From Trichoplax adhaerens (taxonomy: Eukaryota > Animalia > Placozoa), in NCBI RefSeq assembly GCF_000150275.1, contig NW_002060943.1:4112008-4176007 (forward strand): a stretch of DNA of 64,000 nt, written 5' to 3'. The notes under the pieces were generated by a model. It saw only the letters and a program-made list of their open reading frames with translations. It searched no databases and had not been told where the DNA came from. Made by a program: the position numbers and the translations under genes. Positions 42,966 to 47,094 of the stretch are shown one piece after another (position 1 is the first letter of the stretch; every line of letters starts with the position of its first letter).

Positions 42966-44011
42966 AACGCCAACTTTCAGAAAGAAACTTGTAAGCGAGC
43001 CCTTTTCAAATTTCTACCCACAGGTCCAAAGTAATTAGCCATAGTTGCCGACTGAATCCTTCGATTATCGCAGCCATCTCTTCGGTAAGCCATCTGATAG
43101 CTTAATGATGAAAAGGTGATGCTAATGGGTGACTATTTTTGTCATGCCTTTACATATCCACCAGAATGTATAGTCGATAATCGGTATTTTTTGCACTCAA
43201 ATAGAGGATGTCAACGGACATTGTACGGTACTGCACGTCTTGATAGTTTCATCGACTTTTGCTATGCCAACGACATGATGCACTGACAGTTATTCAGTAA
43301 AGACGATAGGAATAGGTCACCTAATTAATATACTGTACGTATAAAATGCACATGTATCAGATCACTATCGCTAGTTGATTGGATACTACTGTATAGTGCA
43401 GCTGAGATTGATAGGAAATAGTACTTAGTTAGCGACTAGAAAAGGATTAATGGACGCATGAACTGTAAATGGACTTACACAAGACTCTACTCCAAGTATA
43501 CAGTATATATTATTGTAATGCTGATGGAGGTCTTTTACCATTATCAGGTAATAGCAATGAGAGTGTAAAGTATTGGAATGGCTAACGGTAATCTTCATGC
43601 TTTGAAAACACAAAAAAATGACTAAAATGCACTTTGTTCGCGTCCACTATTCCATTGATTATGCCGTAGCTTTGTTGAAGTATCCCGTTGCAACTGTATA
43701 AACTACTATACGCGTGCAGTCACTACTGTACGGTATGACCGTAGAATGCAATTCAAAGAGGTTGACTGAGAATGATAATTATACTAAAGTACTGTAATTC
43801 AGTTCAATCTCCAAAGGAATTTGGCTAGCAATGCTTCGTTTGACTGCAATTACGATGTTGCAATCGTAGAAGTAACGATGGAACGTTTAGTGACTGCAAT
43901 ACCAACTCAATAAACTCCGAGCTACAACTTGATTTCTTGATCGTCTTACCAATAACAATATTATTGTTTCCTTTCTATAGAAATCGTAACATTGGATATT
44001 CCTAAGGCAAG

Positions 44012-45857
44012 ATGTCAATCGATATCCCTCCAAATCAAACTTTATACGTTAATAATTTAAATGAGAAGGTCAAGAAAGAAGGTTAGTTCAACAGCAAGAC
44101 AGCAGATAAATGGCAATCTTTTAGCCAGCCAATAAAATCCTATCGCTATTGCAAAATTCATGTAGTATTAAAGTAAATTTATGATGGACTTTCGTATCTT
44201 TAGATAGTATTTGCACGTTTGCTGATATAATTAGTTATTAGGATCACCCATATCGTAGTAATTATGCAAGCGCTACCATAGCCCATATACTCTAACGTCT
44301 TTACAGTTATAATGATAAATTAACGAAATACCGTAGAGAAAGCAAAATACGTATATGTTTCGATGGGTATGAAAACTTGAGTAACCAAGATACAGACATA
44401 ATAATAAGCACGAATTTACTCGCAATACATAGGATAATATACACGTTACAAAAGTTTTTATTACGGTATATCAACTTTGCATTTCCCAAGGATCTATCTA
44501 ATGATTATATATAATTTAATTTATTACCTTTGGATTAGAATTAAAGAAATCCTTATACGCGATATTTTCTCAATTTGGCGCGATATTGGATATCATTGCC
44601 ATGAAAACTTTAAAGATGAGAGGACAAGCGTTTGTAGTTTTTGAGGATATTAGTAGTGCTACTAACGCACTACGAGCGATGCAAGGATTTCCTTTTTATG
44701 AGAAGCCTATGGTAATAAAGAAGTCATTGTAGACTCATACAAATTTTACTACCCTAGGCCTTTATTTGCACGACTTACCAGTCGATATATCGTTATACGT
44801 ACTTTCCGTATGTGCCTAGTAGCTATTACGTGCTAAAGTGAATTAATATGCTATTGATATGAATTGACAATCATATATTTAGAAAGTAGCTTCGGCAAGA
44901 TCTATAAATTTTTGATATCAATACTAATCGGTAGTGTTACATAAGAGTAAAACGTTTGCGATCTTGGTTAATGTTTAAAAGAAATTAATAAAACATTTGT
45001 GAAATATTACAAATTAAGCAAATAGAATTTGGTGTATATAGCACTCGAAAATATATAACTTACAAATTTATTCTTCCTTACTTAACAATGAATTTTAGAG
45101 AATTACTTATTGTAAATCGAAATCAGATGCGGTAGCTAAGAAAGATGGCTCATATGTACCTAGGGAGAAGAAGGTTAGAGAGAAGAGAAAGCCCGACGAA
45201 GGTTAATACAAGAATACAATATAGCGTTATATTAGTACCTTAGTATTTACTTGCATGGTATCAATCTTATTTTCTAAATATGCGTATGGTATAAATCTGC
45301 TCAGCTCCGAAACCGAAACCTGCCAAGAAACAAGCTCCTGCTGCTGGCGAACCTGCTCCTGCTGCGACTGGTAGAGCTTCTTTCGGTATGACTGTCAATA
45401 CAACTTCGATATTTACGTACCTAATTGGTGGCATTTGTTATTAATTTATTGATTTAAAAATTCAATTTTTTATTCTAGGAATGCCACATGCTGCCGGTAG
45501 CCAAGAGGAACTTCCTAATAAGATCTTATTCTTAACTAATCTCCCTGAAGAGACTACGGAATTAATGCTTTCGATGTTATTCAATCAGTATGTCCTTTTG
45601 TCCATAAAATTTGAAAAAGTCTTGATCAGTATTACTTTTGTGAGTGTGTATGATTTTGAGCTGTATATTAATTCGATCATGGTGTGTTCATTGACAGATT
45701 TCCTGGATATAAAGAAGTCCGTTTGGTTCCAGGAAGACATGATATTGCATTTGTCGAATTTGAATCGGAGATTCAAGCAGCTACAGCTCGTAATTCATTG
45801 AATGGCTTTAAAATTACACCAACTCATCAAATGAATATCGCATTTGCCAAAAAATAA
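44012..45857 (+). CDS. SNRPA: U1A/U2B''/SNF two-RRM snRNP protein, 6 coding exons (probable non-coding exon ending at about 43084)
   Basis: [52 protein letters not shown]...[13 protein letters not shown]; RRM2 [46 protein letters not shown]...MNIAFAKK*. The loop-3 region resembles SNF/U2B'', so the symbol denotes the family. Confidence 0.95.
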
Positions 45858-45951
45858 GCTCATGGTGGTTATTACCGTCCACCATTATGCGGTAAAAATG
45901 ATCGTATTTAGTATTGGTAATGCTGAAAGCCTTTTCTGTTCTACTTTTAAG

Positions 45952-46144
45952 AATCGTCCCTTGCATTGCACTTTGCATCGGTGATTGATTTACTGTCCAG
46001 TAATTACGAATTTTTGATCCTATTATGCGCCCTTGTTTACATATTATAATTTGATTATTAGAGACTTAGCATTGCACAAAGCTGAGTCATTAGGAAATTA
46101 ACATTTTATATAGTACGAAACGTTTAGCATTGGATTTGGCTAAG
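45952..46144 (+). promoter_or_regulatory. U1A-binding stem-loops (U1 stem-loop II mimics) in the U1A/SNF 3'UTR
   Basis: C-[ATTGCACTTT]-G loop 45965-45974; GACTTAGC-[ATTGCACAAA]-GCTGAGTC 46063-46088; TTTAGC-[ATTGGATTTG]-GCTAAG 46123-46144; AATAAA at 46461. Confidence 0.75.
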
Positions 46145-47094
46145 AATGAGTGTTTTGGTGAAGAAGCAGTGAATGAAGAATGGCATTTGCACCTAAGTTT
46201 AAAAATTTAATGTAACCTATTAGAGCGGAGCTCGTAAAGATTAGAATATGCGATACCATAGTCACTGGTTCCACTGATAAGGAAGTACGTGTAATATTTT
46301 TTATCGAGGCGATTGCTGACATAAGGCTCATGTGATAGGTCGTAGCGTTTCAATCTCGTAAGGGATGTCACGCAAAGGGATAGAACAGATACTACACCTT
46401 TGACCTTTTATTACCTTCGACATATTATAATATTGTACTTTTGGTTAATGACTGTTCAACAATAAAGGTTTATTGAACTAAAGATGATCATGCGTGCAAT
46501 GCCCTGATTACCAAAGAAGCTAAGGAATTGAAAGTTCTTAGATGTGTGTTTGTGTCATTTAGTGCAGTTACTTATAGTCTAAATTATTTTGATAAAAGTA
46601 TCATTATGATAAGGAGATCGATTACAATTCGTAGACCTTTTAGTGTTTCGTGACTTGCAAACGGTTTAATAATTATGCACACACAATCGGACCGTAGTTA
46701 GACTGTTACTTTATCCAATCATTGTGACAGACTCGAGCTTTTTCAAGCAAGGCAATGATAGTATGTATACTTTGTCTTGACTATAGATCCGATCTTATAC
46801 GATATGAAAATTGCAACATAACTAAAATAGTTAAATTATGCCAAGAAAATTGAAGGATAAGCCACATCTTTGAAATAATTGCATAAACTCTATATTTTTA
46901 TCTCTACTTAATGATGCAGTATAATAGAAGTAGTAATCGTTATGATGGCGAAAGTTGCCGTTATTGATTTATAGCAATATTTCACAATTCCATGAAAATT
47001 TACAACTAGCTAATCAAGAATGAACGATGCAGTTGTACAGTACTGTAGACAATTAAAAACTATTAAGATTTTACAATAGAGACTAAGGTGTAAC

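Follow-up and report, generated by a model that had tools for sequence, protein, structure and literature searches.

U1 stem-loop II loop mimics in the 3' untranslated region of the single U1A/SNF-type gene of Trichoplax adhaerens: a candidate self-regulatory element

The U1A/SNF gene and its transcript

The window analyzed here, a stretch of 64,000 nucleotides from contig NW_002060943.1 of the placozoan Trichoplax adhaerens, carries on its + strand a gene of the U1A/U2B''/SNF family, which is predicted to encode a protein of 231 aa and whose transcript ends in a long 3' untranslated region (3'UTR) with several hairpins. The structure of the gene was derived from a transcript map for which contigs of four public runs, one of them recorded as RNA-seq, were placed on positions 43800-46900 of the window. 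In this region the contigs skip five GT..AG introns, and the gene is accordingly made up of the following parts:

end at ~43082, + strand: 5' leader exon, spliced onto 43980 (a loose contig end matches window 43053-43082)
43980..44081, + strand: coding exon 1, with the ATG at 44012 (spliced contigs, GT..AG joints)
44539..44711, + strand: exon 2, the RRM1 core, with the RNP1 segment and the contact residues K50, M51, R52, Q54 and F56 (human numbering)
45099..45201, + strand: exon 3, which completes RRM1 and continues into a basic segment with REKRKP, aligned to human U1A residues 83-114
45305..45385, + strand: exon 4, a linker rich in Ala, Pro and Lys (GT..AG joints seen in four runs)
45479..45587, + strand: exon 5, the start of RRM2 (contig joints)
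45698..45857, + strand: coding part of exon 6, the end of RRM2 (...NIAFAKK), with the stop codon TAA at 45855-45857 (homologues found)
45858..46482, + strand: 3'UTR of ~625 nt, covered by coding-exon contigs that are continuous to 46482 (X14), 46454 (X10, RNA-seq) and 46465 (X18)
46461..46466, + strand: poly(A) signal AAUAAA, with contigs stopping 0-16 nt beyond it

The protein searches were run exon by exon, and orthologues were reached through short C-terminal ORFs. When the exon 2 peptide was compared with PDB chains (phmmer), it matched Drosophila SNF (6f4g, E=1.2e-27) and human U1A (3pgw, E=2.6e-27) with an identity of ~80%, and the RRM1 residues that contact U1 stem-loop II in solved complexes (Y13, K20, K22, K23, L49-R52, Q54, F56, S91 and D92) are all kept. 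Exon 3 matched human U1A (1fht, E=7.5e-4), and the basic segment that follows RRM1 (window 45162-45200) pairs with human U1A residues 103-114, the REKRKP motif being identical in both proteins. A second RRM ending in ...FAKK is present at the C-terminus, and the translation of exon 6 recovers 201 short C-terminal ORFs of the family (Pfam RRM_1). In a six-frame search of the whole assembly (105.6 Mb, 1,414 contigs) with exon 2, in which the best candidates were scored, no second U1A/U2B''/SNF member was found at E<=1e-3. As the only family member detected in the genome, the gene can therefore be regarded as coding for an SNF-type protein, i.e. one gene serving both U1 and U2. The first-pass annotation, which had been made from the DNA letters and had called the gene U1A/SNF and its product SNF-like, agrees with both the exon 2 matches and the detection of a sole family gene.

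Since the spliced contigs run continuously from 45698 to 46482, all three hairpins described below are located inside the 3'UTR. The same annotation had assumed this location from the position of the hairpins downstream of the stop codon, and the assumption proved sound: the contigs that are spliced over the coding exons reach the three end points given above and thus extend well past 45950, the limit set for a refuting early cleavage. No alternative splicing was apparent among the U1A/SNF contigs of the four runs. The RNA runs of organisms A, B and C are near-identical across the UTR, with one difference, at 46376, and therefore add no comparative power. A neighboring transcript starts or ends ~170 nt past the SNF poly(A) site (46651-46900), as indicated by contigs beginning at 46651-46692.

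U1-type hairpins in the 3'UTR and their conservation

The 3'UTR contains three hairpins and two further conserved elements, conservation being judged against a divergent placozoan contig, L003, which is described below:

45952..45986, + strand: hairpin 1 (HP1), UGC[AUUGCACUUU]GCA, with outer pairing AAUCGUC/GGUGAUU
46063..46088, + strand: hairpin 2 (HP2), GACUUAGC[AUUGCACAAA]GCUGAGUC, with an 8-bp stem
46123..46144, + strand: hairpin 3 (HP3), UUUAGC[AUUGGAUUUG]GCUAAG, with a 6-bp stem and a 10-nt loop
46378..46397, + strand: 20-nt block GGATAGAACAGATACTACAC, identical in L003, the second longest such block of the UTR and unrelated to AUUGCAC
46432..46438, + strand: heptamer AUUGUAC, identical to vertebrate PIE box 2; it is part of a conserved 9-nt block and precedes AAUAAA by 22 nt

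In both HP1 and HP2 the heptamer AUUGCAC opens a 10-nt loop from the 5' side, and the loop is closed by a C-G pair. The HP1 loop occupies positions 45965-45974 (closing pair C45964-G45975) and the HP2 loop positions 46071-46080 (closing pair C46070-G46081), so that the two heptamers are 106 nt apart and lie 496 and 390 nt, respectively, upstream of AATAAA. The positions that had been assigned to the stop codon, to the three hairpins and to AATAAA in the first-pass annotation were all recovered in the sequence. AUUGCAC in a C-G-closed loop is the target recognized by RRM1 of the U1A/SNF proteins (PMC6884704, PMC5071671, PMC9977717).

A single U1 gene was found in the assembly (158 bits), and its stem-loop II has the form C[AUUGCACUUC]G. 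The loop of HP1, C[AUUGCACUUU]G, is identical to this loop in 9 of its 10 bases, and the loop of HP2, C[AUUGCACAAA]G, has the seven recognized bases in common with it. The proposal that the hairpins mimic U1 stem-loop II is thus borne out for HP1 and HP2, whose loops copy the genome's own U1 loop AUUGCACUUC. The likeness to U1 stem-loop II extends to the 10-nt loop beginning with AUUGCAC, the C-G closure and the variability of the three 3' bases, whereas the hairpins differ from it in being part of an mRNA, in having stems that are unrelated in sequence and, in the case of HP1, in an inner stem of 3-4 bp.

The genome's own U2 snRNA (L002 1501-1689; G000:C1410:1489810-1489998) was also located, and its stem-loop IV loop reads UAUAGCACUACUU. 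The human U2 stem-loop IV loop has AUUGCAG at the corresponding place, from which the placozoan loop differs at heptamer positions 3 and 7; this difference may be relevant to the discrimination between U1 and U2 by a single SNF-type protein.

When the whole UTR was folded, HP1 and HP2 were both present in the minimum-free-energy structure, as the first-pass annotation had led us to expect. The closing pair of HP2 had an ensemble probability of 1.00 and that of HP1 one of 0.27; overall, the ensemble probability of HP1 was modest, at 0.27-0.56, and the inner stem of this hairpin comprises just 3-4 bp. The stability of the whole-UTR fold was no better than that of shuffled sequence (z=-0.32), and local windows around the elements of other organisms likewise gave insignificant z-scores. 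The signal resides in the combination of motif and geometry and not in folding energy. A scan of the window with Rfam at gathering thresholds matched no family; none of the curated models accommodates hairpins as short as these.

A comparison within the placozoans became possible through a search with the peptide of the last exon, which led to a C-terminal ORF of 96% identity (P0001) on the metagenome contigs L003 and L004; the source sample of L003 is a marine-biofilm metagenome (PMC6355793). Between L003 and the window, identity amounts to 48% in the last intron and again 48% in the DNA past the poly(A) site, to 89% in the last coding exon and to 61% in the 3'UTR overall. The longest perfect block of the UTR coincides with the core of HP1 (45961-45984, 24 of 24 positions identical). 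Both heptamers and both C-G closing pairs are kept, and the HP2 loop has changed only at its eighth base, which falls within the three-base 3' spacer, a part of the loop whose bases vary among the natural loops compared. In the stem of HP2, an A-U pair is replaced by G.U, a U.G pair by U-A, and one U-A pair by a C.A mismatch. The arrangement of the elements along the UTR has changed little:

stop to HP1: 108 nt in the window, 107 nt in L003
HP1 to HP2: 106 nt in the window, 108 nt in L003
HP2 to HP3: 58 nt in the window, 59 nt in L003
HP2 to AATAAA: 390 nt in the window, 388 nt in L003

Conservation of the loops in a sister species, on which the first-pass annotation had staked its proposal, is therefore seen for HP1 and HP2 in heptamers, closing pairs and spacings alike. 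RNAalifold applied to both placozoan UTRs recovered all three hairpins. A two-sided compensatory change was found in no pair of HP1-HP3 across the two placozoan sequences, and since there are only two sequences, the RNAalifold result stands for consistency and not for proof of covariation.

HP3 had been taken for a third mimic with a degenerate loop, and this part of the earlier proposal did not hold. Its loop carries AUUGGAU and never AUUGCAC, the loop sequence AUUGGAUUUG is changed to GUUGGAUGUG in L003, and the ensemble probability of its closing pair was 0.03. The stem of HP3 is kept in L003 by way of two one-sided changes, and the loop, which differs at 2 of its 10 bases, retains UUGGAU.UG. 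HP3 is thus a conserved stem and not a U1A-type loop, and some other factor may bind there. The AUUGUAC heptamer at 46432 is without a convincing stem and without C-G closure; it may represent a third, weak site close to the poly(A) signal. Inspection of the two sequences by eye revealed no convincing and conserved long-range helix that would bring the hairpins near this signal.

In the window as a whole, ATTGCAC occurs nine times on the + strand and seven times on the - strand. Seven of the + strand copies are additional to those of HP1 and HP2, in agreement with the figure of about seven others given earlier. With 16 copies on both strands relative to 10.3 expected, the heptamer is not enriched in the window, a count of 16 being reached in 10 of 100 shuffles; the heptamer count alone therefore proves nothing, and it is the hairpin context that constitutes the rare part. 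The core pattern GCATTGCACNNNGC has 34 occurrences when both strands of the 105.6-Mb genome are counted, and HP1 and HP2 account for two of them. The expected number per given 625-nt stranded stretch is ~1e-4, which results in P(>=2) of ~5e-9 for a stretch fixed beforehand on biological grounds. Of the 32 sites elsewhere, 21 form no pairs besides the two G-C pairs fixed by the pattern, and no stem among the 32 exceeds 6 bp, compared to 8 bp in HP2.

Outside the UTR, a 6-bp stem is reached by just one member of the GC[AUUGCACNNN]GC class, UGUUGC[AUUGCACGCU]GCAGUG, which is located at G000:C1412:4503528-4503541 on the + strand (L042) and could be a further SNF target. A metagenome scan with the core pattern of HP1 led only to a GC-rich bacterial contig (L019), which was rejected as a chance occurrence that is not placozoan.

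Elements after other SNF-type genes and relation to known systems

The 3' flanks of ten further clusters of C-terminal ORFs were scanned for comparable elements; contigs P0112, P0114 and P0117, whose C-terminal peptide is identical to that of human U1A, were left out. Similar elements were detected after the stop codon, in putative 3'UTR sequence, in 4 of the 9 non-vertebrate-type SNF genes with usable flanks. A sponge-metagenome contig (L022) stops 13 nt after the stop codon and is outside this count. The four positive cases are the following:

L015 (GCA_013332975.1, JAAUXT010022770.1) and L016 (metagenome): five hairpins C[AUUGCACNNN(N)]G with stems of 6-8 bp (L015 2447-2656), situated in L015 178-363 nt past the stop and ~300-480 nt before the first AATAAA
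L013/L014 (ERZ25069859): three boxes, with AUUGCAC and AUUGUAC in hairpin loops and a third AUUGCAC without a simple stem
L011 (SRR34115421): one hairpin, GGAGC[AUUGCACG]GCUCU
L008-L010 (ENA GROS21-1 metagenome scaffolds): a PIE-like double internal loop (L008 2826-2880), 117-155 nt past the stop, in the gene of an SNF-like protein of ~217 aa

Hairpins 3 and 4 of L015 are near-duplicates, which suggests local duplication as a route of expansion. The L008 element, folded with its heptamers held unpaired, presents two AUUGCAC on opposite strands of one stem, with a 5-bp helix between them and each heptamer following the C of a C-G pair. Such a PIE-like loop in an SNF-like gene implies that the compact PIE may not be confined to vertebrate U1A. 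At the position of REKRKP the L008 protein carries ERPKRLKPEGEPKKKKKK instead.

A vertebrate-type control with a non-human C-terminus (L021) displayed the canonical PIE, i.e. AUUGCAC and AUUGUAC in opposed internal loops, 285-320 nt past the stop. No element was found in the scanned flanks of L005/L006, L007 (arthropod-like signature), L017/L018, L020 (the moth Phthorimaea) and L023. Across all loci, 11 strict hairpins were counted in 11.9 kb of downstream sense sequence, and the remaining 206.6 kb (both strands) contained none. Moreover, a covariance model (R1) built from three L015 hairpins, one L014 hairpin and the genome's own U1 stem-loop II, i.e. from a set with no placozoan UTR sequence, was run unfiltered over the whole window (128 kb searched). 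Its best score fell to HP2 (24.8 bits, E=3.3e-4); HP1 shared second place (16.0 bits), and HP3 came sixth (13.1 bits, E=0.69). As to the two origins named in the first-pass annotation, ancestral to animals or convergent, the recurrence of such elements in at least four other non-vertebrate-type lineages favors a wide and old distribution; repeated convergence may also have occurred.

Autoregulation of U1A via the PIE is a textbook instance in which an RNA-binding protein controls the 3'-end processing of its own transcript. In vertebrates, U1A binds two PIE sites on the pre-mRNA that encodes it and, via the basic segment that follows RRM1, blocks poly(A) polymerase (PMC6884704, PMC5071671, PMC9977717). 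The PIE spans 47 nt just upstream of the poly(A) signal; its heptamers form asymmetric internal loops of 7 nt, which face each other on the two strands of a single stem with a 4-bp helix between them (PMC5071671). The placozoan element resembles the vertebrate PIE of the SNRPA 3'UTR in its position within the 3'UTR of a gene from that family, in having two U1 stem-loop II heptamers (AUUGCAC and AUUGUAC in the PIE), each after the C of a C-G closing pair, in presumably binding two protein molecules via RRM1, and in the retention of REKRKP after RRM1 of the encoded protein. In contrast to the PIE, its heptamers are located in the terminal 10-nt loops of two independent hairpins and not in opposed internal loops, they lie 390-496 nt upstream of AAUAAA and not just upstream of it, and the protein concerned is a single SNF-type member and not a specialized U1A. 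The first-pass annotation had likewise described a build unlike that of the vertebrate PIE, with separate hairpins about 105 nt apart and distant from the signal, a description that the measured spacings uphold. The element is outside the PIE class as defined, with neither the internal-loop architecture nor the signal-proximal position, and is most suitably classed as a novel architecture among elements of U1A/SNF self-recognition.

Among the non-vertebrate-type genes, L015 shares with the window the hairpin-type, signal-distal arrangement, and the positive loci as a group (L015/L016, L013/L014, L011 and L008-L010) differ from the window in copy number, which ranges from 1 to 5, in their stem sequences and, in the case of L008, in the internal-loop layout. 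A full-text literature search, with many subscription papers outside its scope, yielded no description of U1A/SNF 3'UTR sites beyond vertebrates. The principle that mimics of an RNA target in the own mRNA regulate that mRNA is also found for the ribosomal proteins L30 and L10a (reviewed in PMC6884704). Systems of this type follow the same logic, in that surplus free protein attaches to its own transcript at a copy of its structural RNA site, but they act mostly through splicing or NMD, whereas the sites described here are in the 3'UTR.

Proposed feedback, competing readings and meaning

From these data we infer binding, sign and step of a regulatory circuit: HP1 and HP2 are probably binding sites for the protein encoded by the same gene and would close a negative feedback, likeliest at nuclear 3'-end formation or poly(A) addition. 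SNF protein produced beyond the uptake capacity of the U1 and U2 snRNAs would give rise to a free pool, which would bind, through RRM1, to HP1 and HP2 of the (pre-)mRNA that encodes it. Occupied hairpins would then lead to a lower SNF output. The step that is hit would most likely be, as it is in vertebrates, the addition of poly(A) or the formation of the 3' end in the nucleus. REKRKP is kept in the protein, and two bound molecules would be available.

The readings that compete with this feedback diverge at different points. Binding of SNF to the hairpins could be real, yet its output could be stability, export, translation, localization, buffering or even raised expression, and not repression of polyadenylation. 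The distances speak for such an output, since hairpins at 390-496 nt from AAUAAA in the window and at ~300-480 nt in L015 are unlike the PIE just upstream of the signal and make a direct inhibition of poly(A) polymerase less obvious here. In addition, the tail of poly(A) polymerase that is targeted by U1A was reported to be vertebrate-specific and not conserved in flies, and tethering experiments in human cells demonstrated that U1A recruited to transcripts can also increase expression (PMC9136276), which renders the sign of the effect uncertain. The signal-distal sites together with the vertebrate-specific polymerase tail thus make a different output a serious rival. Against it stand the retained basic REKRKP segment, the presence of two sites, as needed for the two-molecule complex of vertebrates, and the PIE-like structure of L008, which argues for continuity with the vertebrate mechanism; on balance, we regard a non-polyadenylation output as rather unlikely.

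A more radical departure would be that the hairpins are structured elements for another factor, or serve folding alone, and that their resemblance to U1 stem-loop II is incidental. HP3 and the block at 46378-46397 are indeed other conserved UTR elements unrelated to AUUGCAC, and the UTR overall is more conserved than the intron. However, heptamer, 10-nt loop and C-G closure occur together twice in the one gene whose product recognizes them, the same combination is found with unrelated stems after the SNF-type genes of other lineages, and the heptamer of HP2 is invariant while stem bases vary, all of which makes an incidental resemblance improbable. Likewise, two AUUGCAC might have arisen by chance in a foldable, AT-rich UTR, as the lack of heptamer enrichment in the window would allow, but this is contradicted by the P of ~5e-9 for the two pattern matches in the UTR, by the perfect retention of heptamers and closing pairs in L003 amid a neutral identity of ~48%, by the E-value of R1 for HP2 and by the complete absence of strict hairpins from the 206.6-kb background. 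The chance reading can be considered effectively refuted.

As to the history of the proposed feedback, we put forward tentatively that self-regulation of U1A/SNF via copies of the U1 loop may be an ancestral animal circuit, which would predate the duplication of the vertebrate U1A/U2B'' genes. The signal-distal form with multiple hairpins would then be the older one, and the compact PIE, already present in L008, would represent a derived fusion of two sites, with losses in some lineages such as the arthropod-like and moth genes.

The conserved copies of the U1 loop in placozoan and other non-vertebrate-type SNF genes suggest an ancient dosage control of an snRNP protein, and they bear on the question of how the supply of a single SNF-type protein is balanced among U1, U2 and free pools. 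One and the same protein-RNA recognition appears to have been built into mRNAs in no fewer than two architectures, namely signal-distal terminal hairpins and a compact double internal loop. Together they offer a natural series in which the influence of distance and geometry on the output can be tested, along with the question of whether the original mechanism was inhibition of poly(A) polymerase. The self-regulation of U1A known from vertebrates may thus be much older and more varied in its build than has been described, and both the age and the mechanistic flexibility of this classic feedback loop are now directly testable.
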